NCBI GenBank assembly: GCA_016748015.1
Contig: JAAOMT010000061.1
Span: 186,001-250,000, forward strand
DNA: 64,000 nt
Direction of reading: 5' to 3'
DNA from: Geosiphon pyriformis uo1
Taxonomy: Eukaryota; Fungi; Glomeromycota
Shown here: piece after piece, positions 9,433 through 64,000 of the stretch
Numbering within the stretch: the first letter of the stretch is position 1
How the letters are laid out: each line of letters starts with the position of its first letter
Notes under the pieces: generated by a model
What the model saw: the letters and a program-made list of their open reading frames with translations, nothing else
Told to the model about the DNA's origin: nothing
Database searches by the model: none
Translations under genes and position numbers: made by a program

Positions 9433-12400
9433 ATGTCGAGGCTACCAAAAATACCGACTGCTAGCGGTTTACCAGCCCCTGGTAGCAGTATTGGTTTGCC
9501 GACGCCTAATAATAATGGTTTACAAACTTCTAGTCTTCAACATCCAAAGAAAAGAACCATTTCTGCCCCACCAGCTAAAGTGTCTACTTTAAAAGAACTC
9601 ACTCCAGAACAGGAAGCGATTCTTCAGGAGGCAATGGAAAAATTTAATCCTGAAATTACACACAAAAATAATAATAATCAAAATACCAATCCAATCGCTT
9701 CGCCGGTACTCCCTTCAATATCAGCACCACTACAGCAACCCCTAAATTCCCCTTCAGGTCAATTACGTAAACCCGGCAGTCGAAAGCAAAGCATGTCTCG
9801 AGCAACACGTCCAGTTTTTCCATCGCTTTCTGAGATGCCACCACTACCCACACCTTTATCAACCTTATCGGAAGGGCGAAAGGTTGGCTTTAGTCAAAAT
9901 AATTCGTTTGGGTTACCTCCTCCTGGATCAACATTATTGATGCGTAACCCTTCTCCGTCATCTTCTCAAACACAATTGAGCTCACCCGCCACTGCAACAC
10001 CACCATCCACAGCTCTCAAAAATACTCGTGTACAAGCTCTGACTGCACCTCCTCCACGTCCAACTTCTCCTTCGCTCGCCTTATACAGCGTAGGTGAACG
10101 TGTGACAGTTGAATCAATGAACATTACAGGAACTTTACGATACCTGGGTCCACTTAATATCAAACCGGGGACATGGGCTGGAATAGAGTTAGATGTACCT
10201 GGAACAGGAAAAAATGATGGAAATGTTAATGGGTGTGTATTTTTAATTCGTTTCATTAATTAGCTCTGTAATTTTAATGCTAATTCCGAATTCATTTCTT
10301 ATAGATTTTCATATTTCACATGTCCACCGAAGACGGGTATATTTGTTCTCGCCACTAAACTTTCCAAATCCAAGCAAGAGTCTGATTCACAAGTGTCACT
10401 CAAGAAACCACCCTTATTATCACAATTTAACAAAAATACCTCATCAATATCTCGACCTCCATCGACCTCAAGTAATGCTAGCGACACACATTCTCCCGCT
10501 CAAACCACTCCTGCATTAACCAAACACGCACAACATGCCGCAATAGCTGCTTCTCGTATAACAGCAGGATCACGTGCTTCTAAATACATTGGTGTTACTG
10601 CTTCGCAGTTAAAGCAAAAGTCTTTGGTAAAACCTGCCGGAATCACTCAACCTCTCCATACTTCTGATTCCAATAATTGCGATCCACCCAACTCATCTAG
10701 ATTAAAACCAAGCTTAGCTCGGCCAAGTACGAATAATTTAAAGTCGCCACTAACTTCTAGTGCTAGGGTTAATCGAAGAAGAGATTCTAATTCCTCAAAC
10801 GGATCAGCGGCTTCCGGCGTATCTCAACAAGCCTATCAGTCTCCTCACTCGCACCCGTTTGGTTTTCAACGCTTATCCAGAGCTCCTACTCCTAATGAAC
10901 AAATTGAATCCCAACCATCATTTTCGGATAGTGAATCCCCTACTACGAAGGGTGAAATGACAAATAAATCACTTCAAGAGAAAATTCAAAAGCTTCTTTC
11001 TAAAGATCGTGAAACGATTGATAGTGCTCCCCTGAATATGTTTGATCAACAAGCTCTTCGCATCCAACAATTGCAGATGAAGATAGAAGTTTTAGAATCA
11101 GAAAATACATCTTTGAAGATGCAGAATAACAAGACAGGCACATCTCGTGGTGTTGGAGAGACTGAAAAGGATTCTGCTGCCTCGGAAGGGCAATGGGATG
11201 CCGAGAAAAAGAAATTAAATGAGCAAATTTCTCAGCTCACAAATCAACTTGAAGAATCACACAAAGGTCATCATCATCGCCCAAGCACATCATTATCGAT
11301 GTTAGCTGATGAAGACATAATGAACGACAAGGTTCTTCAACTTACTGAATTGATTGAACAAAAAGATGCTAGTGTCAAATCACTTGAGGAATCGCTTAGC
11401 AAAGCAAATTTACAATCCGAAGAGTATCAGAATAGGCTCAAGGGGCTAGAACAAATAACAAAAAATCAAGGCGAAAAGATTCAAGAATTGATTGCAAGTA
11501 GTGTGAAAAAATCCGAATCCTCAGCCAGTGAAGCTGCTTCAGCTAAGCGAATCGCAGAATTAGAAAAGTTAGTTGATGAAAAAGCTCTGGAAATTGGACA
11601 GCTCGTTATCAAACTCGATCAAGCACAAGTCGTTGCCTCTAACCTCAAATCTGCCGGTCAAGAAACCATCAATATTTATGAAGAGAAAGTTGCTGCGTTG
11701 TCTCAGCAAATTGAAGATTTAAAAAAAGCCGGTTCGGAAACAATAGCTCTCTATGATTCAGCGACAGTAAAGTTGGATGAGCGAGAAACTAAGATTAATA
11801 CTTTGGAAAGAGAAGCCGAGGAGCTTCGATCTGCTGGAGTCGAGGCGATTGATGTATATGAAAAGACAATTGAGGATTTCAAGAAGGAGATGGAAGAGGT
11901 GAAATTGCAATTGAGCAAAAAGGAAGAAGCACTTGTAATTTCGCGTAAAGAATTAGAGACGTTGAGATTGATACAAAAAGAATTGACCGAAGCCAAATCA
12001 CAATTAGAAATTAAAGATAAATGCGAAGAAGGTCTTCGCAACCAATTAATCGATTTACAGACGGGCTTGGAACATATGATGCGTGCAGATGCTAAATCGC
12101 GCGAGCAAATTTATCATTTGAAGGATGATATAAAGGAATCTCAATCAACCGTTAGCCGACAACTGGATGAAATTACCGCCTTGAAAAATAATGTCCAGGA
12201 ACTCATGGGGGCAAATCCCACCGATGAAATTGAAAAAGTTCAAGCCATGTTTGAGGACGATATCAAGAGATTGCAAGAAGAATTGGAAAATTCTCGGAAA
12301 TCGTTATCTGAGGCACAATTAGAAAAACGTGCTGCTTTAGGTGAATCGAATGGATTAAGGGACGAAAAGTCTTTATTAGACAAGAAAATGCAAGATAATG

Positions 12401-19339: not shown

Positions 19340-19479
19340 CCCAAAACAGTAATAATATTATTATGATGTATTTTTTTGCTTTACAAATCAAAAATTGCAA
19401 CCACATTTTACATAAAATTTGGCTTGGATATTTTTGGCTTGTTCAAAGTTTAGATCTTAATCCAATCAAAAACCTATGG
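19340..19479 (+). mobile_element. Tc1/mariner-type DDE transposase relic
   Basis: 19435-19479 translates WLVQSLDLNPIKNLW, a transition-decayed WPAQSPDLNPIENLW motif; upstream KSKIATTF resembles the post-D2 HxSK segment. Confidence 0.75.
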
Positions 19480-20140
19480 GTGTGCAAATCCTAGAATCAA
19501 TAGAGATTGCAAGGATGGGAGCTGTCTGCTTGGGTTTCGCAGACTTGTCTTTGCGCAAGAAAACGTGCATTCGTTGGTTTGTCTAGAATACGCAAGTTTG
19601 CCGTCAGATGTAATATTGTGCGGATAGGCTTAGTTTCGAAGTGGAAAGCCCATAGCACGCATTTACCCTTGTTATATGAAGGTTTACCTTGTGTCGATTT
19701 GCATAGACATGGATTGACGAAGTGTAAAGACACGAGAGATAGAAACGATTCCACGATACTGCGAATCATAATAGTGTGATGCAATGACTTACGTGACTGG
19801 AAAGAAAGATATGTGCGGGCTCACCTTGTTGTCGTTGTGTGTTACCTCTAATAATTTCGTCTCGTGCTGTCAGCGCTGATCAAGGGCTTCATTAGTGAGA
19901 TTAGTAGGAGCTGAACCTAAGCAACTTCTTAAGACGGATGGGGGGCTCTACCAAACCAGATAGCCGAAATACCATCAAAAAAGACATTTTTGTTGAAACA
20001 TCATAGGTTTCTTTTCTGTAATGTCATTTTACTTATTTAACCCAACACAACGCCTTTTGTCACATCCCCAATATGGTATTAAAGGAAAATCTTGCAAAGC
20101 CCATCTATTGCTTTAAGAGCTGTGGTAAGGATATACCTTG
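19478..20140 (-). pseudogene. tnpB: TnpB/Fanzor2-like RNA-guided endonuclease, frameshifted and truncated after RuvC-I
   Basis: Collinear motifs across frames: KVYP (20139-20128), QLLKQ*MGFARFSFNTIL (from 20122), APTNLTNEALDQ, LSFQSRKSLHHTIMIR, ITSDGKLAYSRQTNE, VCETQA, AISIDSRICTP (~19510-19478, i.e. ISIDPGIRTP with three transitions). Confidence 0.8.
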
Positions 20141-20199
20141 GCCAGCAACATGGGCTTGAGAATTTCTTCCGAGCGTTGCATGCTGCGGTTGTCTTGGTT

Positions 20200-20660
20200 T
20201 TCGTCTTGCGCTTTTTGCATGTTCTGGTGCTCTCTTCTGTATTTAGCTGCTCGCTGTCCTTGCATTCTGCAGCTAAAGATCTTGTGACAAAAATATCCTG
20301 GGAAAGTTCGTGTTCGTTGGAGGTTTTATCGTCGAAGAGAACAAAGTTTTCCAGAATGAAGATATATTGGAGGAAAGTGGTAGAGACAATATCCACTCCT
20401 TTCCAATAGGGCCTTAAGTTCCGGTCGTTTGAAGTTGACACCTGAGCCGATATCGCTGAGAAGTTGGTAGGTTGGAAATCGAGAAAGGAGAAATCACTTT
20501 TGTCACCCGAGATCCTTTTTGCTTGGCGCTAGAGAAGAAGTGGCGGCGGCGGTGGTAATCTGCCTTTTGGGAAGTTAATTCGAGAAAAAGGAAAGAGAGT
20601 GCCAGTTGGAGATGTCTTAGCGGCGATCTTTCCCTGCTTAAGCCAACAACCTAAGGTTGT
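20200..20660 (-). pseudogene. tnpA: IS607-family TnpA serine recombinase (N-terminal HTH plus resolvase), degenerate
   Basis: TTLGCWLKQGKIAAKTSPTGT (HTH), SSAKQK, FLLSRFPTYQLLSDIGSGVNFKRPELKALLE (DIGSG starts at 20454), EHELSQDI, IFSCRMQGQRAAKYRR (from 20280). Confidence 0.88.
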
Positions 20661-20758
20661 GTACTGTCAAGATAAATACATGGGGTATTTTATTTTCAAG
20701 ATTTTGAATCTAATCTGCGTTACTAAAGTATAAGCACATCTAATCTAGTACATGTAAA

Positions 20759-22117
20759 ATGGAGAAAAATAAGCATGTAACTTTTTCCCTCGAAACAAAG
20801 GAAGATCCATCCAAAGGTTTTTGTGAAGAGATTTCTAGCCTTAAAGAGCCTGTTTTTTTAGAAAAGCAACGGCGGAAAGAAGAAGAAGCTTTGGAAAAGC
20901 AATTCATCGAGGCGATTTCGAACGGTGACTATGAATTGACTAAAACTTTGTTAGATGAAGAAGGCGACGTGTGGTACAGGAATGAGCAAGTATGCTAGAA
21001 TTTTTTCATTCCAACCCCTAAATAGTTCTCAATTTGTATTATTTCTCAAAAAAGGGGGTTAGCCCTTTACATTTTGCTTGCCTCAATGGCCACTTTGAGT
21101 TAGTAACGTTGTTGCTTGAAAATGGTCATGCATGGAATGCAGTTGATCTCAAAGGGGTATCAGCTGCTGAATATGCCAAAAGAAATGGGCATGAAGTCAT
21201 ATATCAGCGTCTTTTGGAGGAAGGCTGTCGGGTAGAACTAATTCTCGGTATTGAGTTTTCCTTTTTATCGTTAATTAATAATTTGGCAAAATTTATCCCT
21301 GTTTTTATTGACCTATGAATTCTCAAAAAGGATATTTTAGGAAAAACGACATTGAAGATGAAGATCCCGAGGCACCAAATCAAGATTATCTGACGAAGCC
21401 TCTTCACTACTCCGAAGATGGCACTCGATTGCTCGACTATGAATGCAATGGAGTTATGATGGGTTGGGAACGACCACTAATGGATAGACATGCCGAGATT
21501 ATTTGCACAAATGAGGGTCTTGATATTCTTAATATTGGATTTGGGCTTGGATTAGTTGATGATGCCATTCAAAGATACAAACCCCGTTCCCATACCATTA
21601 TAGAAGCTCATACCGACGTGTTTAGCCATATGATTGAAAAAGGCTGGGATAAGAAGCCTGGCATAAAAATTATATTTGGGCGATGGCAAGATGTTCTGGA
21701 ACAGCTTGAAACATATGATGGCATCTTTTTTGATACATTTGGAGAATTCTATGATGATCTTCAAGAATTCCATGAGGAATTACCAAACCTCCTACGAGCA
21801 GAAGGAGTTTATTCCTTCTTTAACGGATTGGGTAAACATTTTATTGTTACTGGTCTTTTTTATTATTTTCAATCCATATTAAGTATTAATTCAATACCAA
21901 TGCTTTTTGCCTGAGGAAAATAGGAGCCACTAACCCTTTTTTTCATGATGTGTATTGTCGGATCGCTGAAATGCACTTGTTAGAGGTTGGTATGAGTACT
22001 CAATTCCAAGAGATCTCAATTGATCCTTCCGCCGACGAAATTTGGGAAGGGGTCAAGGGACGATACTGGACATTGGAAACCTATAGGCTGCCAATTTGTC
22101 AATTTTTAAAAGTTTAG
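20759..22117 (+). CDS. RMT2: Protein arginine N-methyltransferase 2 (ankyrin repeats plus class I methyltransferase), 4 exons
   Basis: SPLHFACLNGH...GHAWN ankyrin; GVMMGWERPLM, ILNIGFGLGLVD, HTIIEAH, GRWQDV, YDGIFFDTF, YSFFNGLG/ATN, W..VKGRYWTLETYRLP. Confidence 0.93.
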
Positions 22118-36657: not shown

Positions 36658-37531
36658 TTTAAAATATGAAAATGAAACTTTTAATTAAAACAATATAAAT
36701 ATTATTATTTAAAATTAAAATTAAATAATTTAAACTTAAACCAAAATACAAAAATCTTATAAAATCCTAAATTTAAATATAATAAATTTAATTTACTTAT
36801 ATTACAAAATAAAATTAAACAAAATTACTTTATGTTTTAATAAAATATTTTTAGTATATACAAAAATATAGTTTAAAAACTCAAAATTTTCATATTTTAA
36901 GCAAATAATATTTGTATAAAATCTATTATATAACTTTTTATATTAATAATAAACAATTTTTTATAAAATATTTTTATAAAATAAGTTTTTAATTTGACAA
37001 TTTTGGTATTAATAAAACTAAAACACTAATTTAAATATTATATAAAAATTGTTTTATCTTAATTTATATTATTAATTAAATTAACATTCAAAATTTTTTT
37101 AATAAATCTAATTTTTTATTTAATATAATTAAATATATTGTACAATTTATATATATAATATATAATAATATTAAAGATAATAGTACTATTATAATTATAA
37201 AAAAACAATTAAAAATTTTAAAATCAAAATATAATTTAATAAACAAACTTTACTAATTAAATAATTTATAATCTTATTTAATATATTAAAATAGTTTTTT
37301 ATTTTAAATCAAATTATTAATAATTTTTTGTTTTAAATTAATAAATTAATTTTTTTTCTTAATTTAATATTTATTTTTAAATTAAATTAATATTTTGACA
37401 AATAATAATTATAATTAAACTATTTATATATATAATATATAAATACTATAATAAAACATATTTTAAAACTAAAACAATAATTATGAATTTAATCAATTTA
37501 AAAAATATTGTATTATAAATTTTAATATTAA

Positions 37532-40500
37532 TTTTTTTTTATGAATATAGTTTAATTATTATTTAATATACAAAAACAAATTAAGTAGTTCAAATTAAAT
37601 ATAACTTATATACTTACTATATATAATTAATATTATCAATAGAATTTTAATTATTAATTAACATAAAATTATCCTTATAATTCTTATTATTAATTAGCAT
37701 ATATTATTATTATTTCAATTATTACTTATTAATTAATCAAATTATTAAATATTACTATTTAATTATAATTTGATTGGTATGATACACAAATACAATAATC
37801 AAATTATGCAGTACACTAAACTCTATAATATTCAAAAATTCACCAAAATTTGTAAAAGTTTGCAAAATAATTTAATAGTTTACCAAAATTGTTTATAGTT
37901 TGTAAAAATACCTTGTAGTTTATTAAAATTATAACAAAAAAAAATGCAAATTCAAAAACTAATATTATAACAAGTTATATAAAAGAAGAGTTTTTTTTTT
38001 GAAAAAATATATTTTACTTAAAATTATCTTATCTTTAGAATAATAATTTTATACAAAACAATAAAAACAAAATACTTTAAAAAACAAATTCATTTAATTA
38101 ATTGTATTTAAAATTCTTTGAACTTCAACTAATATTTTGAAATTAATTAATTACCAATTTCAGTAATCTGTTAATAACTTCAGATTTAAACAAAAAATAA
38201 TTTTCTTAATGCAATTTCATTTTTTTGTATTTTTTTTATTATATACACTAAAGTAGTCTATAAACAAAATTCCTGTAAAAAAGTTAACTTTTACAGCAAA
38301 ATAACTACATATTTTTAGTAAACTTTTAAACAAGCAATTCTTTTTTAGAATTGATTTTCACTGTAAAGTAATTATACAAGTAATTGATATAAAATTGGTT
38401 ATTCTATTCATAAGTCTAACAGTTTAAATAAAAGATAATTTGAAGATAAATTTAGTTAATAAAGATTTACAAACTTCCAGTAATTGTAAATTTATAGCAA
38501 ACAGACATTAACAGCATTAAGAAAAAAAGACCAAAAACCTTTGGTAACACCAACTATTTAAGTTAATTAAGATTATACTATATATTTATATTAATTCCAA
38601 ATTTATTATCAAAACTAAATAAAAAAAACATGTTTTGTGCAAACTAAAATTAACTGTAAAAAACTCGATAATACTAAGTAAACAAGTCACTTCTATTAAC
38701 AAAAAACCAGACAGACCACTGTGTATTTTAGCCAAAACTTTTATATTATCAATTAATCTATATTTTTTTATATCAACTTTGTATTTTAATTTAAAATTCT
38801 ACAACTTACTATAATGTCTCTTAATCAAACAATAAACAAAATTAGTTATTATTAGTGCAGTTTTTTTTTTGTTTTTAAATATTAAAGCTGTCTTATTAAT
38901 CTAATTCTTAAGAATAATTTTTTGCATAAAATTTTATAAATGTTTATATTTAATATTTCTAAAAAAAATACATAATATTAAAAATAACAATAAAGAACAA
39001 AATTTTATCAAAAATTTTTACAATTCAATATAATCCAACAAAATTTCAGAATGCACTGAAATATTTTTTAAACAAATAAAAATGTAATTAAACATTTCAA
39101 TATTACTATAAAACAAATATAAAACACTTGAGTAATTTTTATTGTAGTTTTTTTTTTACTGCAGTTAACAGTTTCCTATAAACTGTTTTTATTAAATATG
39201 TGTAAAAAGCAGTTAAAATTTTGTTAATAAACCCAAAACATATATAAAAGTTTGAATACCAGACCAAAGCAGTATAATATTAGTTAATATTTCAAATTAA
39301 TAAGTTTTATAAAATCCTATTTTCTAGACCTGCTTCTTATTGAGCATAATATATTGTTTGATAAATATTGTGAACAAAGTAGTAAGTATTGTTTAACATA
39401 ATCATATTATCAATTACTATGAATTTTTTATGAACACTAGTAGAAAAAATCAAATATAATTGTAGTATTTCATATGCTAAAACATTAACTTAGTCATTGT
39501 TAGCATTCTTTAAATGGTTTTTGATCTTTATTTATGTTACAGAAATGTCTTTTGATCTAATTAGATTAGTTATATACTGTTTTTTAATTTAGCATTTGCT
39601 CCAGAAATTAGGTATATAAAACTTGAACTTTAAAACATATATATTTATAGCAATTTGGCTGTCTATATACAGAACTACAGAACAAAAAGAAGAAATATAT
39701 TCTAATATCAAAACAATAGTCTGCAACTTTAATATTATTAATAATATTCAAAAACTTTGATACTTATATTTACTTTAACATTAGAAAAATAAGCTACTGT
39801 TTTATTTACTATTTTTACTGTACTTAAATCTTTTAATAAACCATTAGTATACATATTAATCTCTTTTCTTCATAGTTTATATAAACATTCTTAAATTTTT
39901 AAAAACTTTTTTGATCTAAAAAAATTTGAGCAGCCAAAATTAAGTATGTTTCTATCAAATTTAATAAAAAAATTGTTTATATAAATTAAAGCTTTTACAA
40001 ACTATGCCAGTACTAAACCTTTTGGACTTAATCTTTTTTAACAATAAAAAATTTTTCAATTTATAACCAAACTATGCTTATTCAATAACATATTATTAAA
40101 AACAATATTTAATCATTTCAAAAACCAAATTATCTTAAAGTAATAAAAGTTTTTCAGTATATTAGACATAAAAAAATAACCAAAAAAATAAAAAGCACTA
40201 GGTAATTTATTTGTCAAAGAAATCTTGTTGTCCAAAAAAATTATTCATAAAATTGACTTTTAACTTGACTGTAAATTATAATGAGTTTTTTGGCATTCAA
40301 TTTGCAACGTATAAATTCAAAACTTGGTATACAAATAAATAACCAAAAATTTTTATTGCATTAATAAACCTAATTAATAAAGCCACTTTGCCTTTTGTCT
40401 GTATCTGCTTAAATAATTTTGGTTTATACAAAGATGGATAATTCAAAGTTTTATTAAAAAAGTTTTTTAGCAAATTAGCCTTAAATTTAAGCCTTTTTTA

Positions 40501-43500
40501 ATTATAATATTCTACTTTTGACACACATTTTTAAACACCAAACTGAATTGTGTTTAATAACTAATTATAGACTACAAAACTGTTAAAATTAAGTAGAAAA
40601 ATTGCTTATTTGATAAAGTTTTTCTAAGCATTATGTTTGAAAAAAACCTAATATTTAAATGTATTTTGACAAAACTTGGCTTAAATATATTCTTTATAGA
40701 TAAAAAATTTTTCAGATATCTATGAAATTTTCTATATTTAACAATAAAAATTGGTTAATTATCAATATATAATAAAGCAACTACAATTTTTTGATTTATG
40801 AAAATTATAATTGTTTTGTTATTGTTAATATAAATATTATTAATCTTAAAAGACTGATTAGCCAGATTCAAAATGTATTGTGTTAAAGCTTAATTATTTT
40901 CTATCCAAATAGTGTTATTTACAAAAGTACTTACTGTAAAAAAAAAGTTTTTTTTTTACTGATTTCTACTTTGTTTGTCTTTGCCACAAAATTAATATTA
41001 ATTTAATATCTACATAAATGTTTCAGTCTCTTAATCTTACACAATAAGGAATCATAAAAATTTTTCCAAAGAAATAATAAAAAAACTTCACCTTAATCCA
41101 ACTTATTGTGTACTTTGTAATTATTTAAAAAACTAAAATTTGTTATTACTCTATTAATTTTGTTTTTGTATATATTACCAAATAATTTAATAAACTTGTC
41201 ACACATCTTAATACACTTCAAACTAATTTTTAAATAATACTATTCAACTAAATTATAAGCTTTATACATATTTTATAGAACCAACCAAAGTTTTTGGCTC
41301 TTTTTTAAAGCATTTTTTATAATTGAACCAATAACAAACATTAAAAATTAAATTAAAGTATTTTTTAATACTAAAAAATTATTACTATAAAGAATATTAA
41401 ACTTATTATAAGCAAATAAAATATGATCTAATAAGATTTTGAATAAAATTTTCCTAATTGTTTTTATTAATACTATGAATTATGTGTTTGTTAAAATGTT
41501 ATTTCAATTATATAATTTGAAAATTATTAAAACTTATATCTTTTTTTAAAGAACTAAGACATTACTAAAAGTTAAATAAGTGTTTATTAAATTCAAAAGA
41601 CATTTTACTATTGTATTATTATAGTGTTTCTAAAGTTTATTAGTTATGTCAGAAAAATCAGCAGCTTTGTCATTAAACAGATTACCAATTACCATAATTA
41701 AATCTTCTATGTTGATTGTGCTTATTACACCAGAAAAGACATCTTTACTTATATATACTAAGAGTATATATTAACAAGTCTATAATTCAAACAGAGTTAA
41801 AAAAATCTTATACTTTCTTATTTAATCTTCTATAATCTTGTTTATTCTAAGCTTTATCTTATTTGGCTTCAAAACCAATTTTTTTCCAATTACTAAATAA
41901 TTCAAAACTATTTTTTAAAACAGCTATTTCAAAACATTTTTAATTATGCTACTCTTATTAGAACTGAAGTTTTCTATGTACTTTTTGATTATATTTCTAA
42001 TAGATGTATTTTTAATTGCCTCAAACTCATAGTACTTGAACTTACAGTAACTTTTTTTAATTATTAACAAATATTTGGTCACATTTACAGAACTTGTATT
42101 ATTATAAACTAAGCTGTTAATTTCAAAAGCTCTTATTTTATCAACAGATAACCACTTTCTAATAAAATAATCAAATTCCAATTTATTGCTTAAACTTAGT
42201 ATCTTAGTCATTTTAAATACCAATAATTCTAATTTGTAAAACTTAAAAAACTGTTTATTTTTTGAACAATCAAATTTACTGTACCAATATTTAAAGAATA
42301 CTTTATTAGTTATATTTACTATTACTTTATTTAAGATCTCCCATATTGTATTTAAGTTTTGAAAATTTTTAGCATTTGTAAACTTGTACTGTATTATCAA
42401 TAGTTTAGAAGAAGAATATTTCTTAAAACTTATTTATTTGACATTATTTACATCTTTTGTTTTAAACTTTTAATGATTTTTATTAGTCTGTTTGCAAGTA
42501 TTATTTAGATAAATATTTAACAGACTTTCTAAATCAACCAAAATTGAAACTGTTTTGTAATTAGTGTCAAAAAAATTGAAAACAAAACCAATTTCACAAT
42601 TTACAACAATTGACAATAAACTTTTATTCAAAAAAATATAATCAATAATTTTTTTAATCTCTTTAAAATTACACCAAGTAGGATTTTTAGCCAAAAAATA
42701 ATTAAAAAAATTTACTAAACTTATATTCAAGCCTTTTTTAAGATTTGTACACTTTTTGAAATTATTTTTATTGAAGTTACCACTTAAGATTGCAAATAAA
42801 CTAAAGCTAGTTGTCTTAAAAATAAAAAAGTTGACATTAAAAACTTGTTTAAACTTAGTTCCAATTGACATTCCAATATATAAATTCAAAACTATAACTG
42901 ATAATTTATTCTTAAACAGAAGATGAATTAAAATTACTTAATTAAAAATTTTTTTACTTTTGTAACATGATAAGCCAAAATATTATCAATAATAATAGTC
43001 ATATTAACACTAAGATATTTATTTTCCAAATTAAATGTAAAAATTCAAACTTCATTAAATCTGTTTATTATTTATGGCTTAGACTTTAATTTTGTTTTTA
43101 TTACAATAGATATTATGTTTTTAGAATTCATATGTCATTAAAAAATGTTTTCTTGCTTGGCTAAATTGTTTATACTTCTAATATTTCACATAGCAATTTT
43201 TTAAATAAAACTTGTTATTGAGAAAAATAAAAGTTTACACCCAAATTAATATTCTTTATTTTGGCCAAAAAGCCCAAAATCATATCTGACAAATTGTTTA
43301 TCTTATTTTCTAACTTATAAATAATTAATAACTCAAAAAATACTGCTTTTACAATAGTTTTACTACTAATAATCACATCTAAACTTTTACTTATTATTAT
43401 AATTCTGTAATAAAAAAGTCATTAATAGCTAATATTCAAGACTAAACTAAAAAACTATTGGTTTAAGTGTTTTTAATTTTTTAGCCAGCTTATCAATCTG

Positions 43501-45033
43501 TTTTGTAAGACTAACAAAACTGTGTTCAAGAGCAGCAAATCTATTATTTACTTCCATTAAAACCAGCAAAAAAAATTTATTATTCAAAAATAAATTAACA
43601 ATTACAAAAACTGATAACATTACATAAAAAGAGTTATTATTAACAACTTGCACTTATGTTTTATTACCAAAAAAGACTGGTAAAACAATTAAGGCTTGCT
43701 TTTTTTTATAAATATTAATTAATCAAACACAATTCTAAAAAGTAATCAATTTTTTACCACAACTACCAAAATTTTTACCAAATATATATACAGTAAAAAT
43801 ATGACCAAATTGTTTGTATTGAACACAAACAATTAAAAACAAATCAGTTCAACACAAATTTATATTCTTAAAAATTGGAACAGAATTAATAGCAGTTTTT
43901 TTTAATGTTTTATTAGCAAAACAAATAATTACATATTTGTTATGTTTATATGTATTTAAATTATAACCAATAAAGCAAGTTTTTTTATTATATAATGTCA
44001 ACAAATCAGAAAAATCATGAACAGTAATATTAACTAATAAAGTATACAATAAAATTTAATACTAATCTTTAAATACTTATATATATTTATTATTTACAGC
44101 TTTAGTTACATATACAGAATTATTTTTCATAAGAATTAATTACTTGGTCATAACCAAATTAGCAATATTAACTGTTTTAAATTTAATCAAAGCTTTTTGT
44201 TAAAGACTAATAAGTTGTATTTTAATTAATAAAATCTTATTAAACTTAGAAAAAACAGATTTTACAGTCAATTTAAGAAGATCAACTGGAATTTTTTTAA
44301 TAATTATTTTCTATTCTGTATAATTGTTTACTTTTTTAACATTATTATTAACCAAAATTTTTTTATAAATTGTTATATTCTTAGTTTTTTTCAAACTTAA
44401 TTCTGATATAAAGAATAATTTAATAATTTTTAAAATTTTAAAAAAATAGATATCTCTTCCAAAACCATTAACACAATAAAAAAATTTTTTTAAATTAATT
44501 AATTTATTTTTAAAAATTTTGTTAAACACTACAGAAAGTTTAATATTCAATATAAAAGATTTAACTAAATTAAAACTTTATTTTTTTAAGACATGTAATC
44601 TGATCAATAAAAATTGCTTGGAGCCATTAAACTTAAAAAACAAAAGCACTAAAATATTGTTATTATTACTTAAATATTAAAGGAAAGAATTATTAATGAT
44701 TAATCTAATATATATGTTTATATATAAGTCTTTTATAATATAATATTATCTATATTCTTATTAACTATTAAAATATCTGAATTTGTATAACTGATTTTCT
44801 TAAAAAAACTATTTTTTATATTTAACAGATTACTAATACTACTTGTTTTACTATTAACTTTATTTTCTCAAAACATTACAGATTTCTTATTAAAATCTTT
44901 AATATCTTTCAAATTTAAAAAACCAGTAGATAAATTAATTATACTACTATCAATATCTGGGTTTTTTGGTTTTTTATAAAATGCACCACAAAAATAAACA
45001 TTTTTCACATGTTTTTTTTTGGTGCTTAAATAG
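37532..45033 (-). mobile_element. Heavily decayed L1-like LINE, main body (ORF1 ~45033-43215, ORF2 ~43218-38578, 3' tail split by a solo LTR, poly(A) at 37532-37540)
   Basis: Endonuclease remnants (LSGNFN, IDYIFL, FDTNYK), ORF1 remnants (YTLLVNITVHDFSDLL; KHVKNVYFCGAFYKKPK), ORF2 C-terminus homologous to the other copies, stop at 38580-38578. Confidence 0.88.
37631..38549. repeat. Probable solo LTR (919 bp) inserted in the LINE 3' tail
   Basis: Ends TATTATCAA (decayed TGTTACCAA)...TTGGTAACA; flanks TTAA/CCAA fit a decayed 4-bp TSD; removing the insert restores the family 3' tail. Confidence 0.7.
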
Positions 45034-46324
45034 TGTTATCTGATAGAAATTAACAAAAATCAAAAATAATAATATTATAATATATTAATTAATTATTAAA
45101 TAACAGTATAAACAGAACAAATTAATAAATAAAATTAAAAAACATAATATGCACATAATAGTGTGCAAAATGTATACAAATGCATCCAATTTAATATGAT
45201 CACAAACAAGTGAACCAAAAAACACTTATAGTTAAACAGAAGATCCAATAACTTAACAATTCTTTACTAATCAATTAGGATAAACATAATTATATATAAC
45301 TTAAAATATGTATATATATAATAACTTTCTAACTAAAAAAAAAACAAACAAAAAGAAAGAATAATAAAGAACAAAAAGTCAATTAAATAAAATAAAAATA
45401 AAAAAAAGGTAGAAAGATTAGATTATAATTACAAAAAAAGCTAAAAAATGTATCTTCCAAGCTTTGTATTATCTACTAATACTGATATTAATAAAGTTAA
45501 AGATCTTTTTTCTTTATAATTTAATCTCCATTAACAACTAAAAAAACTACTATTTTCTTTTCTACTATTGCTTTTCTGTTAAAAAAAACAACAGTAGAAA
45601 TATTTAATATGTCAACAAAAACATAAATAAAGCTCAAGCTTAACAAAATTGAAAACACATTAAAAAAATATTAAATACATAAAATTACCTAAAAAATATT
45701 TGTAATACTTTGGCCAAAATTAATGACCAACTTAAAAATTTGAAATAAGCTCTTTATATTTTTGGAAAAATAATTTTTAATTAAAATTATTTTATGAATA
45801 TTAATTTTTGTTGAATTCTACTTTTTATTTTTAATTTTCTTTGAATTTATTAAAAATAAAATACTGCTTTACTATAAACAAAAAAATACAAATATTTGAT
45901 ATTAGCATAAGATAAAAAAAGTATTTTTATAAAAGTCTTAAGAAAAGACATAATTGGAAGTATAGATATATAACAAAAATTCTCCTTAAAAAACTAGCAT
46001 AATAGCAGTTATTAACAGCAATTTTGACAAAAACATTATGCTATATACCAAATCTAATAACAAAGACACTTATCAGAAAAAATTATTTAATATTTGCTAG
46101 AAAATTAAGAAAACTTATTATATTAACTTTTAGATCTTTAAATAAAAGAATAATAATAATATATTAAATAAGAATTCAGCATAAATCAAAAACAATACTA
46201 ATTAAAACTAATATACTTATTTTTATGTCAAAATTAGATAATTTACTATATTATTATTTGATTTAAAAGGCCATAAAAATTAATTATAATATAATCACTA
46301 AAATAAAAAAAAACATTTATAATA
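45034..46324 (+). repeat. 5' LTR type B (~1.29 kb)
   Basis: TGTTATC...ATAATA; collinear with 62105-63396 over its length. Confidence 0.85.
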
Positions 46325-46537
46325 TTTGATATTTACTTTAAGATTTAATTTTAATCTATTTAAGCCACCTAAATTTTAACAATAATTAATTGTATAAATT
46401 AGCAAATTAAAGTAACAAAACCAGTAACAACTATTAATTCTTTTAGCCAAAATCCATATTACTAATTTCAAAAAAGATTGGGATTACTTAATAATTATTT
46501 TTTAGCTGAATTAATTTTTAATTACTATGTATATTAT

Positions 46538-46953
46538 TGTTACTTATAAAAAAGTACAAAAGAAATAGTAAGAAAAACAGATAAAAAAATAGACCAATAA
46601 AAGAATAGTATTAAACATGTGAGCACATTGTTAATAAATTATAGCATATTGCTCAGCAATATGAGTAATATCAATAGATTAGAGTACATCACTTAGCAAT
46701 GTAAGTATTACTTATGAAATTATAGCAAATTCCTTATAAATATGTGAGATCTTATAGAATATCAATTATGTATATATAGTAAAAGTATTAAAAACAGAAA
46801 AAACAGAACACACAGTTAGAATTTCTAGTTAAAAAACACAGTTAAAAGCAGTCCAAAATTCATATTACATATTAATAAATTATTAATTACCACTTGAATT
46901 CATGTTATTATCACTTGATTAAAGAATATTAAATTATTTTCACTTTATTAATA
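46538..46953 (+). repeat. Internal type-A LTR
   Basis: Start TGTTACTTATAAAAA vs TGTTACTCATAGAAA; TATA block AATTATGTATATATAG...ACAGAA; end and downstream leader all match the reverse complement of 4945-5386. Confidence 0.7.
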
Positions 46954-49900
46954 CTCCATATTGATAGAATTTAATACTTAACCATACTAAAACAATAGTT
47001 CTTAATTATGGCTATTAATAAAATACTAAATTTTTATTTTTTATTTTTATTTTTTTATTTTTTATTTTTTTTATTTTGTTTTGTTGATTTTTTAACTAAT
47101 TAAAAAGATTAAAATGCAAAGTATTAACATTAAAAAAAAGACTGATAAAAGACTTAGGAATAAGAGTAAACATTCAGAATTAAGGAATAGCTTATCAGGA
47201 AACCAGCCATCAAGCTAAAAAAAAAATTAATAAAAAAAAATATTTTAAAAAGTTACAGACAACAACACATATTAACTCAAAATTTAAAGAAGAAACTAAA
47301 AACATTACAACAGAATATCAATATTGAATCTCTGTTTATTATATAAAAGATTCAACCAAAACCTTCAGACACCAAAACCTTCAAATATCACCAATCATAT
47401 TACTTATTAAGCACCAAGTTATGGGTTTGTTATTTGTATTAACACTTCAAATAATCACCTGTAATATTATTAAATTTAATATTTATTTGAACAAAGTTCA
47501 AAACTCCAAAAACAAAAACAAAACCTATATTAAAAATTAATCTAACACACCATGCTATTTAACACACAATTATTTCCAATAACTCTGGTACAAATACACT
47601 AAAAAATTGAAAAATATGCTTAGAAAAGTTTTCTATTTACTTTCAACAAAAACAGAAAAGACAACAGTAATCAAGATAACTAACTAAAAACTTCAATACA
47701 AATATTCTATTAAGGAATCATGAATTAACAGCAAACTCTAATCCCATTATATTAAAAACCACAGGTCATATTATTAGAACTTTATCCTACTATTTGTTAT
47801 TAAATAACCAAATTAATATATCATTAAGAACTGCATTCTTATTTACCACAAAAACAATTCTTTAAACCCTTAACTATGTTTACATTTTATTTAAAAGAAA
47901 ATTTTTTAAAAGACCTATTCTAGGAGAATACTTATCATGATTTTTAAACTCACTTTCTTTACAACTAAACTTTCAGACCACTTGGGAACTTAAACTTAAA
48001 TCTGAACCAGAATTTGAGTTTAAACATAACCAAAAAAACAAAGTACCAGAAAAAGAAAAAAAAAAGTAGAATTTTTAAACAAATTAAAACCAGAACCAAT
48101 AGCTTTTTTTGTTCAAATATCTGTAAATTCTTAAAAAATAGCTACTTTCTATATTGCAAAATTGATCAACTTTACTAAAAAAAAAAGATGTTCATATTTA
48201 GATTAAAAAAACACAAAAAACAATTATAACAAATAATTAAAATAAGACTTATAGTTTTCAAACCTTATTATTTTTTTTAAAAGACACAGCTGACTTTTAA
48301 TATTAGAATTTAAATTACAAATTCAACACTTTTACACAGTTTTGAAATACATTTTTAAAATATTTTTACAACTCTAACACTATTATCAAACTTCAAAATA
48401 GATTTAGTACTATTAAATAACAGCTTAATAAAACAGTAATTAAATATTTTAGTAAATTTAATCATGTTTTACAACAGATTAGAGCCATAGAAAACAATTA
48501 TTATATAGCTTCTCAAATTCTTAATTAGTTTGTAAAAAAATTAAGAAGTAGTATTTTAAAATAAATAAAATCATAATATTCAAAATTTACCCTAAGCTGT
48601 TATATTGGCTTAAAATATTAGGTTAGCCAAAGAAAAAATTAACCACAATAAAATAGTAAACTTGGTAATAAATAACAATAATACCAAAGAACTGAAAGAT
48701 AAAATTACTTAATTTAAGGAAAAATTATCTTAAAAGATGAAAAGTTATCTTTTTAATACCAAACCCTAGGTACCAAACTAATATCAACTACTGTAACAAT
48801 AAAACCAAACACCCTTCTAAAATTATGACTATTAAAACTCAAATAAAAACCAACAAAATATACCAATATATTATTATTATTAAAAGTACAAACATATCAA
48901 AGCCAAATATTAATTACTACAGTCTTATTAAAATTCATAAAAAAACAATTTGTGAAAATTATCTTTTAGTAATTAATATATAATATTTTAAAATTAATAC
49001 TTAGTATTAATTTAATAGTATTCTCAACAATAGTTATTATGACAACAAAACCTGGTTCAGTTATAATATTTAGTTCTACTATAACAACTATGACAAACAT
49101 TAACTCTTAGATTACATTTTTAAAACTTGAATTGGAAAAAAAATTATCTATTTCCAAATTTAAACTTCTTGGATCAGTCAACAACAAATACAATAATACT
49201 ATAAAACTTGAGTTAAAATAATAATAGATAATACAATACACTTATATATTATCAACAAGTGTTTTTTAATTTATTTAAACTACAGAATTTTTATAATATA
49301 ACATTTTATAAAGATTAGAACATTAGTATTATCAAAAGTTTTACTGTTAATATTAGTATTAATAATAAAACATTAACAATTATATTTTCTTTTGAACTTG
49401 AGAAAAAAAAATTCACTTTTATTTTGTTTAGCAGAGCTACTTTAAATGAAAATAAACTAATTATTACTATGTATACTAAGACAAAAACAGATAGTAAATT
49501 TATTAAATTAGTTCTAAACAACAGATTAGCAAAAAGCATTATTGATTTTTAATTAATGAACCAATTAGATTATTAAATTAACAAAAACACCAGTACTTTT
49601 ATTATTACCATTAATGAAGCCAAGAAAATACCAATTAAAAAAATTAACTTCTTTTCTTTTAACATAAACAGAATAATTATTTTCACTAAAGTATTAGTTA
49701 TAAATACAACTTAATATTAAGCATTAATCAAAAATAATTGGTTAGAAAAAGGAAAGTTATTTTAAATTAATTGACTCAAAAATTATAACTAATATATTAA
49801 AAACAATACATATAGGTATTTACTATATATAGATATTTTAAAAAAAATTTCCACACAAACAATTTATCCCAATTTGAATTTAAAAAAACATTGAAAACAA

Positions 49901-51803
49901 AAACCATCAAAACATATTAGGTTAAATAGGACAAAAATAACTGTAAAAAACTATTATTTGTTCTTAAATAGACTAATAAAATTTTTAATTTTATATTATC
50001 ATACTTTTTTTGTTTCTAATGTCTTCAAAATTATTGTTCAAAATTATAATGTTTAGTTTGTCAAAAAAAACTATCTTTTATAATAACTTGTATTGCTCTA
50101 TACAAAAATAACCAACAGACTACTTACTACTATTGTAACTAATATTACAAAAAAACATATAGATATCCAAAACAATTGGAAAAATAAGATAAAGCTTCTT
50201 GTATTATATGTGAAAAAATTTTACTCAATAAATACAATTGAATTAATATGTAATTTAAAAAAGCCATATGTAACCACACTTGTTAATATACTATTCTTAT
50301 TACTAACTAGATAAAAAGAAAAACTTTCTTTAATATTGTTTATAATAGAGCCCTAAATTACATATATTATTATCTACATAATACCAAACAACTTTATAAT
50401 ATAGCTAAAACAAATATACAAGATAAAATAACTAAAGAAATTCGAAATTAGAAGACACTAGCAGAAGTTATTAAAGAAGTCATTAGGTACAACTCTTTAT
50501 ACTCTCTACAAAAATTTTAAAATTATTATTAAGAACTTTGTCCAACTCAAAAAAAACAGAAACAATATTTTGTACAAATAAATACTTACCTGTATAAAAA
50601 TTGCTTAATTCTTTGTTAATTACAATAGTGTTTTGACTATTAGTCTTAGTCTAAACTATTTGAAAAAACAGCTTAATTTGAAAATTATTCAGATTATAAA
50701 ATAAGAAATACATTTTACAAATATTAAAAGTGCTATTAGACAATTTGGATACTTTTATTAATTTTCAACAAAAATTGAACATCAAATGTTTTATTAACAG
50801 CAACCAAAAATTTTTTTTAAAATAGATGTATTCAACCAATACTAGATTTGATTTCTAATATTTTAGAAACTAAACACTAATATTAAAATCATTTACTATT
50901 ATTATAATTAACCTAAAATTAGTGTTTGAAATACCAACTAGAACTATAGTATAAATAGCTCTTTAATTTAGTTTAACCAGAAAAAAAATTAATATTAAAA
51001 GAAAAATTATAAACTCCAAATATACTGAAAATCTTATAGTTTTATTATACAATAAATTAAACTAACCATATGTAATTAAACCAAAAGAAAAAATTATACA
51101 AACAATTTTTTTATCTTTATTTCAAATCATTAGATTAATTACTACTAAGACTCAAGAAAAGCTAAGAAAGACCAAATACAGAATTTAAGATCTTGATTTT
51201 ATAAAAACAGTCACATTATATATTGACTATATAGAAACAATACAGGAAAACTTAGACATAATCTGAATTAATAAAATAATTACAATATTATTATTCAAAA
51301 CATACTTATTTAATATATACAAAAAGACAACAAAAAAAGATCTTTTATTCAAACTATATACTTTCTTTTGTAAATAATTTTCAATTGGTCTTATTAATCT
51401 ATATATACTATGCTATAGCTATTTGCAAATAGAAATACCTATTCACAACTTATTTAAAAAAACTATATACTTATCTAAAAATACAGTCTTAGAATATTTG
51501 AGCATAAACATCACTTATTAACATAAACTCCAAGAAATTCTTGACTTCTTCCAGTTAGTGTTATATTGTAAAACTAAACTAACTCTATTAAAATTAAGTA
51601 TTAAATATTATTAAATAACTAATAAAAAATTAATTAAGCTTAATCTTAGATTACTAGACTTTTTACAACAAAGACAATTGTAAGTATTTATCTTAAAATA
51701 CTCAAATATTTTTGCCAAAAAAAATAAGTTTGGACAAACCAATTTGGTTTATTATCAAATTTATACAAAAAATACATTATTTATTAAGCAATATGTTTAT
51801 TAA

Positions 51804-54800
51804 AAATATTTTAAAGTCTTAACCCTGACCACAATGAGAGCAAAAGATAATTTTGAAGAAATTGCTTTTTTTTTTCCCTCTCACCTCAGTTCCTGTTAAC
51901 TATTTCTTCTAACTTACCTTTATTTGTTGTAATAGAACTGGTGGGCTCATCTGCTGGTGGTTCTGGTTTGGGTTCAGCTGGTTTGGAGACCTGTCAGAGT
52001 GCTAAAAACAAGCATGTTGATATGGTCTACACCCATGGTGCATTCTACAAAAAGCCTAAAAAGCCTACAGCTAGCGTTTTGGTTAAGTCGTCTGCTAGTC
52101 CTCTATATTTGGAAGACTTGGGTGGTGACAATGATAAGCTGGCAGCATTCTGGGAAGCAGAGTGGGTAGTGTTCTGGCAGTGTAAGTGGTCTTTCGGATG
52201 TCAAGAATTTGGAGAACTTAGTTGCCAAAGAGACAAGCTACATTAATTCAGGTAAGGACGACGAAATGGATGAGACTACATCACGTAGGACTCGCATTCG
52301 GACGTATGTGTTGGAACAACCTCTTAAGGTGCTTCTATTTGCTACTATGAACAATGATGACAATGATTCCATGTTGCCGCCTTCTAAAATCAATGGGCCC
52401 AATCAGCTGCCTTCTTCTAAATCACGTGTTCTCGAGAGTTGTAGTTTCAAGCCAGTGAAATTGTTTGCTCTAGATGTGAATTTGTCAGCTGTTCCTGGCA
52501 GGACTAATAGTAATAAGCTTATTTCAATCAAAAAAATTTTTTACAAAATTGATGGTTTTGGAGAAGCTTCAACTCCCTCAAAATTTCTTGGTGTTATTTA
52601 TTCGACTTTCACAAGTGAGTCTAGTTTGATTAAGGCCAGAAAAATGGCAGTCTGTGAGAAAATTGTTGTAAATGGTGATCTCAAAAAAGCAAACATTCAT
52701 TCAAATTAGGAAGTGGTTATTAAGGAGATCCCAATGGATCTTCCAAAGCTGGCTGTGGAATCAGTTTTTTCTAAATTTGGTAAGATCATTTCCATCAGAA
52801 TGCAATTGATTGGTCTTTGGCAAAAAACCTGGATTGAATTTGAGTTATCAGAAGTTGCCAGTTTGGTCACTTCTAAGTGGTCTGTTCTTATGGGAAAGGA
52901 TTCAGTTTGTGTAGCACTGGCCGTTAGTGATAAACAAACATGGATATCTAGGGATCAACATTGAGCTATGCTTTATACTTTGCCTGTGAGTACTTCTGCT
53001 CATGATTTGTCTGATTTATTGATGTTATATGGTGGAAAGACTTGTTTCATTGGCTGCAATCCCAGTTCATATGTCTGCAATCAATGTGTAATCATTTGTT
53101 TTGAAAATGAGGCTGCCAGATTGGTTGCTGTTAGTACTATTCCAATTTTTAAGGGTGTTAGTTTGCATTGGGCTAATCTTGTTTTGGCTAGTTGTGCCAA
53201 GTGTGAACAATTTGGTCATATCACTGTCAACTGTTCTGTGGGTAGAAGTTCTGGTATTCATGGGAAGAGAGTGGTTTCTGATCATGATCGGGTTTGCCTG
53301 GCTGGTATATATAAGAAAAAATCGGCTTGTATTGCCTGTCCAGTTTTGTTTGGTGGCAAGACATGGGCTTAAGTTGTTAGTGGCACCCCCTTCCATGCGT
53401 TTCTTTCTGGTTTTTCTGATTCTGGTTTGCATTCTGGTTTAGTTCCTCCTTCAGCAGTCTTTGATCCTTTTGTTGTTTCTCATTTGGGTGATCATTTGGC
53501 GGTTTTGGAGTGCTCTTTGGAGCTTTTGGCTGACTGTGTTTCTGGCATCTTGGTTAGGTTGAATTCTTTTGGTATGGTTTCTTCAGTTCCTTCTTTTTTG
53601 GTCTCCTTTCCTGTTGCTTCTGCAGCTTTGGGTTCTGAAGTGGATTCAAATATGATTGTGGACAATGCTTCAGGTTTTCTTAATATTACCTCCCCTGTCA
53701 CTGATAATGCTGTTGTCGATCTCAGCACTAGTAGTTTCAAGGTTCTTACTGCCAAGGTGGGCAGTTTGGAGACAAAATTGGTCACTTTGGAAGCTTCAGT
53801 TGGTTCAGTTTTGAATAAGTTGAATTTTCTGTGCTCTAGTTTGGGTTTGTTAGCTCCCACAGTTTCTCAATGACTTATTTAATTTGAAAGATTGCAACAT
53901 GTAATGTCAGAGGTATGAACAATTGTGCAAAGCAAGCAGACATTGTTTGTTGGCATAAGGATATGAACAATCTGGTCTCTATTATTACTGAAACAAAGTT
54001 GTGGGAAAAGATTTGCTCTTGGATCGCTGATAGGTTTGATGGTGTTCGTGTTTTTACTTCTGGTCTGGATTCTGGTCACATGGAATCTGGTATTGCTATT
54101 ATTTTGAATTCTTCATTGGCAAGACATGTGTGCAAGGTTTCAGAGGTGCCTGGTTGGCTCTTGTCAGTGAGGCTGTTTTTTAAGAACAAGCTTTCTGTGT
54201 TGATTCTGGGGTTGTATGCTGGCACTTCCTCGGTGGTTCATTTTTCTCAGGCTGGTGATATCAACTCTTTCATCACTAAAGCAGTGAATGAATCTTCTTT
54301 TGTTATTCTTGGTGGTGATTTCAATGAGGACAGTTCTCACAAATGTGCCAGTTTCAAAAAGTGTTTCGATTTGAGTTTGGTCAACTCTTTGGGTGGGAGT
54401 TTGTTTGTGAAATCTCTGACTTGGTGCAATTCTTGTGGTGCCACCAAGACAATTAACTATGTTTTTGTCTCCTCTAATTTAATTAATGTGGTTGTGAATC
54501 GCAGTGTGGCTGGCATTAATGACTTTTTTGATACTGATCATAGGACTGTTTCTGTGTCTGTGGATATAGGTAGATTGTTGGATGTGCAGCTTTCTTCATT
54601 GTGCAAACAGACCACCAGGAATTGTTGGAAATTTGACATCAAGAATGCCAATAGAGCTAAGTGGTTGGAGTTCAAGGACACTTCAGCTGCTAATGCCTCT
54701 ATGTTTTCGGATGCGTTTGGTGCTGCTGTAAAATTTTCTGATATGGACGCTATGTGGAACATTGTTCACAAAATCATGATTCTTTCTGTGAATGGTACAT

Positions 54801-61600: not shown

Positions 61601-62104
61601 AAAAAAATGAGCCAAACCTAAATTGTTTTAATTCTTATTATGAGAAAAAAAATGCTAATATATTAATTGATAAAATCATGAAAAAATTCTAACTTTTAAA
61701 AAATACAATACCCAAAAAAAAAACTTAATTGTTTTTTTTTGCTATACATATTTTATGATAACCACATAATTAGATTTTCAAACAATCTACACTAAAAAAA
61801 ATAGCAAGAAAATCAACAAAACAAAACTTCAAAAGTTCAAAAAACTAACTAAAAAAGACAACTTTAAACACTATTTTAGGATAGCATACTAACTCTATGT
61901 GCTATTTTAATATTGTTCAGAAGTATTGTTAACAAATAAAATGAATATACTTATTTCTAATAGAATTGGAAAACTTACTAACAATAAATTCCAGAATTTG
62001 TAAAAATGAATAGTTTAAACAACTATACAGATTTTTATTTTAGATATTGATATTAAAAAAATACACATCAATTTTAATAGAACTTAATCTTAAGAAGAAA
62101 AAAA

Positions 62105-63396: not shown

Positions 63397-63580
63397 GCAG
63401 ATTTTTAAACCAGCCAAATCAAAGTCAAAACCACTAGTAAAAAAGTCTATTAGTTTTATTACAACAAAAAATAATGTAGTAAAAGAAATAACTAAAAGAA
63501 AAAAGAGAAAAAAAATAAGAAAAACTATTTTTTTAATAACTCTAAACTTTTATTGTAACCAGAAGATCAACAAAAAAAGA
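63397..63580 (-). mobile_element. 5' end (5' UTR plus start of ORF1) of the minus-strand LINE split by the Gypsy insertion
   Basis: Reverse complement matches 51820-52000; joining across the TSD gives in-frame GLKICLSTKKK vs GLETCQSAKNK in the intact copy. Confidence 0.85.
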
Positions 63581-64000
63581 GTTTTTTTTATATTAATTTT
63601 AAGATTTATATTTTTAAAATACATAATTATATTATTAATTACAAAAAAAACCCAAAATTTTTAATAAAGTTATTAATATATATTGTTAAATCTTTTAAAT
63701 TACATAATAATAAATAGTTAACAAGATTAAAAATAACCAAAACCAAAAAAATATTATTATTAACAAATACAAATTTTATAATATCTGTTTTTATATATAT
63801 ATTAAACATTAAATACAGCAAAAAATTGATATAAAATTTAAATTTATTTATAAAACAAAAAATAGATATATTATTATTTAAAATAAAAAAATACATAATT
63901 ATAATATATTATAATATTAAGTTTTTTTTATTAAAATTTAATAAGCATAGTCTAATTATTATTTAGAAATTAGAAACAAACTAAGTATTCTAAGACTAAA

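Follow-up and report, generated by a model that had tools for sequence, protein, structure and literature searches.

Relics of an IS607 transposon family in Geosiphon pyriformis suggest that its Fanzor2 gene gained a spliceosomal intron

A dead transposon copy among fungal genes

Our first question was whether short motifs, scattered over one strand of a fungal contig, are the remains of an IS607 element encoding a serine recombinase (TnpA) and a Fanzor2 nuclease. Note that, here, the window is the whole stretch of Geosiphon pyriformis DNA analysed, 64,000 nucleotides in length. The TnpA and TnpB motifs listed in the original prediction were all found, on the minus strand and in the order given there, spread over three reading frames. 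Taken singly, the stop-free pieces yielded almost nothing. A Pfam search of them gave no relevant match and, in an NCBIfam profile search, only the SDIGSG piece matched NF033518 (E 0.0042). Hence, a comparison of multiple copies was required. The window stretch has 70 DNA matches within its own genome, at 63–94% identity. It is also colinear with an intact relative, L076, from the left end through 19478 (75% identity over aligned columns, a value that includes a spurious tail beyond 19478). The HTH motif resembles the start of an intact TnpA, P0002, at nearly every residue. A homolog search with a short decayed piece returned a single protein, G. pyriformis G9A89_018258, which is an annotated copy of the family and confirms Geosiphon as the host. 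We are confident that 19478 to approximately 20750 (minus strand) is a dead, right-truncated IS607/Fanzor2 copy, from a family of more than 100 copies that has since decayed. The predicted pairing of IS607 recombinase and Fanzor2 is supported by colinearity with L076 and by the profiles that intact relatives match. In itself, the window copy is an ordinary dead transposon of a known kind.

The copy was initially placed at 19478–20660. The 19478 edge holds but the left edge reaches approximately 20750. A left-end remnant, comprising the second subterminal repeat and leader, occupies 20682–20752 (minus strand) and was aligned to the left ends of L076 and other copies. Its terminal CCG is no longer legible, and the outer boundary is good to within about 10 nt. 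The tnpA pseudogene, for the IS607 serine recombinase, lies at 20079–20681 (minus strand), from an ATG at 20681 to a TAA at 20079–20081, and carries many frameshifting deletions. The YARV residues preceding the catalytic serine have been removed by deletion. The part encoding the N-terminal winged HTH (20570–20681, minus strand) is retained here, whereas it is deleted in most aligned Geosiphon copies. The 5' two thirds of a Fanzor2 pseudogene (19478–20565, minus strand) start within tnpA, in the +1 frame, and end just past RuvC-I; the start codon position is now AGG. The last element sequence still recognisable is a decayed RuvC-I motif at 19478–19507 (minus strand), which reads SIDPG-RTP in the family. 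At the glycine codon of DPG, a single change between GGG and AGG had been proposed. Most related copies have GGC, from which AGG is two changes away. One 13-nt end motif can still be recognised. RuvC-II, RuvC-III, the zinc finger, and the right end were looked for across the whole window and are absent, as anticipated for a dead copy. The right-end RNA region is missing too.

Could this be a contaminant or a misassembly? The gene pair is prokaryote-like and poor in introns. Moreover, an RNA contig and the assembly differ at 4 of 707 letters. The differences are three substitutions and one inserted base (window 19932, 19976, 20137, and 20299), and are due to allele, strain, or assembly error. 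Nevertheless, more than 100 copies, each decayed differently, are spread across dozens of contigs. Fungal genes flank the copy on both sides, its RNA has undergone spliceosomal processing, and the RNA contig spans the break point into flanking DNA. Contamination, a concern raised with the original prediction, was not borne out, and we give either artefact almost no credence. The neighbouring genes encode fungal ceramidase, Josephin, RMT2-like (ankyrin-methyltransferase), and TRIP4-like proteins. These ordinary neighbours also rule out a proviral setting for the window.

The host carries a multi-copy family, as had been predicted, with over 100 decayed and dispersed loci in the Geosiphon assembly. 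Queries from intact relatives gave at least 152 TnpA matches (270 candidates) and at least 96 Fanzor2 matches (740 candidates). Right ends within two mismatches number 62 in the genome, compared with 0 in a reversed control. The intact copies suggested to exist elsewhere in the genome did not materialise among the best-scoring candidates, all of which carry stops. Four subfamilies, A to D, can be distinguished among the fetched loci, and the window copy belongs to A. Relative to the profile of its subfamily, a copy carries a median of 10–13% substitutions, chiefly C>T and G>A, and numerous deletions (median 10 nt); for the window copy, divergence is 10.7%. RIP-like or strong CpG hypermutation was ruled out, since C>T change at CpG is just ~1.6 times that in other contexts. 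We conclude that this is an old family that, as far as this assembly goes, has died out. More than 100 dispersed copies imply past mobility, which would have depended on TnpA.

Several further observations were made among these loci. Most aligned copies (left parts of L001–L075) lack the ~90–110 nt encoding the TnpA HTH, which suggests that HTH-less, non-autonomous derivatives may have done much of the spreading. L015 and L016 (G000:C687) are identical-scoring relics in a tandem duplication, ~2.1 kb apart. L031 and L032 (C649 and C783) also score identically, and reflect either a segmental duplication or a haplotig. In the same genome, there is another Fanzor2 lineage, distinct from the main one (L051 1465–3144, L052 270–2230, and L061 1500–1713). 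It is nearer to chytrid-side proteins (P0301, 63–69% in the RuvC part) and has DNA gaps, skipped by the protein matches, that could be further introns. In L052, there is a CCATCCG terminus at 2225. L037 (1441–1998) is a tnpA relic without DNA similarity to the main family, and so a further IS607 lineage. Finally, the window contains A+T blocks (37000–52000 and 59000–64000) with 18% GC, a CpG observed/expected ratio of 0.02–0.05, and sharp borders against gene islands. These blocks contain no CCG or CGG, compared with 6.4 CCG per kb in the gene island. Hence, a copy in the gene island is expected, and lack of CCG alone may explain siting among genes.

Anatomy of the intact element and its nuclease

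The living element can be read from L076, found in an ENA soil metagenome. This is an intact element of 2,274 bp, with a 258-aa TnpA and a 651-aa TnpB-family ORF (Fanzor2). Its left flank is A+T-rich (22–35% GC) and eukaryote-like, and bacterial genes appear only after ~10,000. The contig is probably chimeric, so we rejected L076 as proof that the element occurs in Bacteroidota. The probable join, at 9440–10025, lies a few hundred bases right of the element, between fungal-like and Bacteroidota-like DNA. The flanks of L076, across a single CCG, read as one short open frame (P-G-Y-Y-G).

The TnpA of the intact relatives scores 153 bits against NF033518 (cut-off 110), as well as matching PF00239 and PF00376; P0002 and P0005 both exceed the NF033518 cut-off. 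These proteins are serine recombinases with an N-terminal HTH, and the window copy is colinear with them but broken. In these elements, tnpB lies on the same strand as tnpA, downstream of and overlapping with it. As suggested originally, ends were defined by multi-copy alignment. The left end begins, and the right end finishes, at CCG, and the flanks are unrelated. There appears to be neither a terminal inverted repeat nor a target duplication but a short core shared by both junctions; since these were read from alignments, without a true empty allele, a 3-nt duplication and a shared core are formally indistinguishable. The core is CCG on the coding strand and CGG on the other strand, and the exact point of crossover cannot be assigned. 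Both ends contain short direct repeats: two copies of a 13-nt motif in the left end and one in the right, all in the same orientation. IS607 elements lack inverted repeats and duplications, and their TnpA binds end motifs (PMC6188088). Hence, the CCG ends, unrelated flanks, and repeated 13-nt motif are consistent with IS607.

The N-terminal third of the L076 Fanzor2 is encoded within tnpA, in the +1 frame. This nested frame has 0–3 stops in most clade members, including those from Nostoc and a giant virus, compared with 14–15 stops in two canonical IS607 elements. At the other extremity, the last 140 nt fold better than shuffled sequences for 4 of 5 ends (z -2.8 to -4.4), and 11 of 39 pairs exhibit two-sided change. 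This region is likely to be an omegaRNA that overlaps the end of the Fanzor2 coding sequence.

Fanzors are distinguished by a DPG motif and a glutamate six residues before the zinc finger (10.1101/2023.08.09.552727). The RuvC-I DPG motif is present in the family profiles and L076, and decayed in the window copy. The catalytic glutamate, six residues ahead of a C4 zinc finger and followed by the RuvC-III aspartate, is present in the family and deleted from the window copy. For a structural model of the L076 Fanzor2, the top match was ApmFz2 (9B0L; Z 22.1, rmsd 4.2, 437 residues aligned). Model residues 67–637 align on 53–517 of the 9B0L chain, which places the nested part on the Fanzor2 N-terminal domain. 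With other TnpB and Cas12 chains, alignment does not begin until about residue 170 of the model. The model thus predicts a Fanzor2-type N-terminal domain and overall fold. By analogy, nucleases of the L076 type would carry out RNA-guided, TAM-dependent cleavage.

Probable intron gain in Fanzor2 and RNA from the relic

In subfamilies A and C, a GT...AG segment of 81–90% A+T separates a lysine codon from an aspartate codon of Fanzor2. At the same site, a short coding loop stands in place of the intron in subfamilies B and D and in the intact relatives. The segment lies in phase 0 and its removal restores the frame. Genome-wide, we found 34 donor matches, 40 acceptor matches, and 17 pairs at a distance of 53–99 nt (median 83), together with 24 intron-less matches. 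Copies that retain the intron at full length include those at G000 C669:125888–125960, C662:637993–638084, and C771:146141–146227. Host introns at this locus are 65–92 nt long. With its GT and AG ends, T-rich body, host-like length, and restored frame, the segment has the sequence hallmarks of a spliceosomal intron. In a DNA tree, A and C are grouped (SH-aLRT 95). The intron-less subfamily D nests inside C, although its rows are flagged for composition and two of them are less than half filled.

Downstream of the intron, 59.5 synonymous and 25.5 non-synonymous changes over 154 codons separate A from C (dN/dS 0.05). Note that the profiles compared are column majorities of decayed copies and retain 2–3 stops. 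Dead copies, set against their own profile, have dN/dS of 0.3–1.0. The low downstream value indicates that the nuclease was under selection after the intron was gained, and hence that splicing was required. We conclude that, in the ancestor of subfamilies A and C, gain of a phase-0 intron by Fanzor2 and continued purifying selection are strongly supported. The nested Fanzor2 was very likely expressed via host splicing after this gain, while the element was still mobile.

RNA evidence comes from contigs of one public run, which has no library record and is labelled 'probably DNA'. In that run, splicing is seen at three GT-AG introns of RMT2 and at one intron of RMT2's neighbour. At the window copy, RNA contigs cover 19358–20530 (minus strand), including ~120 nt beyond the break; the 5' end of the transcript was not captured. 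The phase-0 intron of the subfamily has collapsed here to a 20-nt GT...AG remnant (19668–19687, minus strand). One splicing event has removed 105 nt (19583–19687, minus strand), using the ancestral donor and a cryptic acceptor further downstream (joint 19582–19688, CT..AC). A cryptic intron of 66 nt (19759–19824, minus strand), which is coding in other copies, has also been removed (joint 19758–19825, CT..AC). The original statement that no introns are evident is wrong, given the remnant, the intron in other A and C copies, and these RNA joints. A higher-depth RNA contig matches only window 19856–19876 and 20239–20272, then diverges, and probably derives from transcription of a different family member.

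The A+T-rich segment might, instead, be an insertion by which Fanzor2 was inactivated in a master element that went on transposing, since only TnpA was needed for this. TnpB is, after all, dispensable for transposition (PMC6188088 and PMC3627910). Splicing to the ancestral acceptor was not seen in the RNA contigs at the window copy, where the intron has collapsed. Furthermore, the joined form is short of ~7 residues found in subfamily B, but loop length varies among intact relatives, and the loop is of low confidence in the model. An insertion of this kind does not account for the GT and AG ends having been kept, in phase 0, while the interior differs between A and C. The same applies to the host-like length, the dN/dS downstream with catalytic motifs kept, and use of the donor in vivo. 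We consider a killing insertion improbable, and retain the spliced intron as our reading.

Today, the RNA from the window copy is non-coding and divergent from RMT2. The longest Met-ORF in any exon is 50 aa, and a coding role was rejected exon by exon. The RMT2-like host gene (20759–22117, plus strand) encodes ankyrin and methyltransferase parts, has three RNA-confirmed introns, and lies head-to-head with the relic. The sole methionine codon of its first exon, likely the start codon, is 78 nt from the tnpA ATG and ~10 nt from the left end of the element. Hence, the RMT2 promoter may lie in the relic. The window copy would now make only spliced, non-coding RNA, probably from a bidirectional promoter common to both transcription units. 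A related proposal is that the left-end remnant has been co-opted as the RMT2 promoter or 5' UTR, which would explain why the relic survives and is transcribed. The position of the sole exon 1 methionine, with an in-frame stop just upstream, fits this, as do good coverage of RMT2 by RNA contigs and divergent transcription of the relic. Conversely, no contig covers 20576–20943, leaving the start site unmapped, and an upstream exon is possible. The copy has diverged as much as its siblings have (10.7%), and its position in a gene island is expected regardless, given A+T blocks without CCG. We view co-option as a possibility, but an unlikely one.

Origin, proposed mechanism and known systems

Where did the family come from? 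Among named organisms, close relatives occur in Rhizophagus, Diversispora, Cetraspora, and the chytrid Borealophlyctis. At two places in Borealophlyctis (L157 131–2419 and P0294), Fanzor2 either adjoins an FHA plus HMG-box gene or has been annotated as a fusion with one. A tree was built from 40 rows of the RuvC core, selected from 84. One clade (96/89) unites the Geosiphon profiles with the soil elements and the proteins from Diversispora and Cetraspora. Its sister (100/96) comprises elements that include two on giant-virus-like contigs.

The Nostoc endosymbiont had been suggested as a donor. Most pro-Fanzor IS607 elements are from cyanobacteria (10.1101/2023.08.09.552727), and the best plasmid matches, to Nostoc and Trichormus, share the nested frame with the family. 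However, over the RuvC half, identity is 38% with Nostoc PCC 7120, compared with 53–79% for Glomeromycota and soil elements and ~55% for those on virus-like contigs. Joint monophyly of the PCC 7120 pro-Fanzor and Geosiphon was rejected (p-AU 0.000125), in a test that took in this one named Nostoc sequence rather than the symbiont strain. When 185,579 prokaryote genomes were scanned by word pattern, no TnpA exceeded 44%. Together with relatives in three other glomeromycete genera and a chytrid, these results make direct passage from Nostoc to Geosiphon highly improbable.

A horizontal origin is, as predicted, likely, but it is older than Geosiphon and more probably ran through giant viruses than through Nostoc. 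One such scenario, compatible with a dead IS607/Fanzor2 copy in the window, is entry into an ancestral glomeromycete from a giant DNA virus. Elements of the sister clade lie on gene-dense contigs that encode either DUF5901 and minor capsid P11 or RNA ligase and DUF4419. One of them, L158, has the same right-end terminus as the family. Integrated giant-virus sequences have been reported from Rhizophagus (PMC10640383) and from zoosporic fungi (PMC13533422). These contigs are, though, short and unclassified; two of four sister rows have no informative context, and a sister relationship gives no direction of transfer. Scans of viral contigs turned up a single distant TnpA but no Fanzor2 of close similarity; the evidence for a virus link therefore comes from contigs in the protein collection. 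We lean slightly towards entry from a giant virus, and passage by way of a virus into an earlier fungal ancestor is plausible. That all three proposals hold jointly (giant-virus arrival, an intron-spliced nested Fanzor2 in a mobile element, and a dead left end serving as RMT2 promoter) is rather doubtful.

From this anatomy, a mechanism can be proposed. Briefly, TnpA, a serine recombinase with an N-terminal winged HTH, would have bound the short direct repeats observed in both ends and, with chemistry as in the IS607 literature, recombined DNA at the CCG core. A Fanzor2 of ~650 aa, its N-terminal domain nested in tnpA, would have loaded the omegaRNA formed by its own 3' coding end and the right end. 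By extension from TnpB and Fanzor2, it would have taken a guide from the right flank and cut empty sites, favouring retention of the element. In the ancestor of A and C, entry of the phase-0 intron into a variable surface loop would then have placed Fanzor2 expression under host splicing. The base ahead of the left CCG is A in 12, G in 3, C in 1, and T in none of 16 independent ends, and right ends are nearly always TCCG. The chance of finding no T is ~0.001 if T has a frequency of 0.35. Hence, a nuclease recognising RCCG or VCCG would cut the empty site and spare the TCCG junction of its own element. This 4-nt RCCG motif is a prediction; characterised Fanzor2 TAMs are 3 nt long (PMC10432273 and PMC11832414).

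These data place IS607-Fanzor2 elements across arbuscular mycorrhizal fungi and their kin. They describe a selection-supported intron gain in the class of Fanzor thought closest to bacterial TnpB. If the intron was gained while the subfamily was active, a bacterial-style element was adapting to eukaryotic life. What raises the case above routine is the combination of this intron, its RNA-confirmed donor, the rejection of a Nostoc donor, and an intact relative. With L076 and the virus-like L158, a complete nuclease, end RNA, and the predicted RCCG motif become directly assayable, and the way in which a Fanzor2 avoids cutting its own right junction can be tested. Our literature search, which was incomplete, found no paper on Fanzors in Glomeromycota, nor any that describes an IS607-borne Fanzor2 with an intron. 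That Fanzors can gain introns has been published (PMC10530073), but the worked example is a Fanzor1 in a Helitron.

The nearest characterised system is ApmFz2 (ApmFNuc), from an IS607 element of Acanthamoeba polyphaga mimivirus (PDB 9B0L; PMC11832414 and PMC10530073). This likewise pairs IS607 TnpA with Fanzor2, and shares the DPG, shifted glutamate, C4 zinc finger, and N-terminal domain. It is both the best sequence match (E 6e-25) and the best fold match (Z 22.1) for L076. However, identity is only 21%, ApmFz2 has no intron, and its TAM is GGG, compared with the CCG core of the Geosiphon family. Its conserved non-coding 3' region extends ~200 nt past the ORF, compared with 44 nt in the Geosiphon family and L076. 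Hence, in the latter, the right-end RNA must overlap the coding end. NlovFz2, from Naegleria lovaniensis (PMC10432273), is also a eukaryotic Fanzor2 with a long N-terminal extension, a likeness drawn from its description rather than its sequence. Its measured TAM, 5'-CCG, equals the CCG core at both ends here, but a transposase association is not reported for it (PMC10432273). Among bacteria, ISXfa1, IS1535, and the Nostoc PCC 7120 plasmid element have the same tnpA-tnpB order and HTH serine recombinase (10.1101/2023.08.09.552727 and PMC6188088). Bacterial IS607 and pro-Fanzor elements also have repeated end motifs and a right-end RNA, and lack terminal inverted repeats and target duplications. 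In ISXfa1, one base separates the TAM (GGG) from the element's own junction (CGG), and the same is predicted for the Geosiphon family. The bacterial core is, however, GG rather than coding-strand CCG, and canonical IS607 has no long nested frame; the Geosiphon family adds a spliceosomal intron and a eukaryotic host. Finally, IS607-like Fanzor2 relics in yeast (PMC3627910 and PMC3673617) are likewise IS607-derived sequences in fungi.
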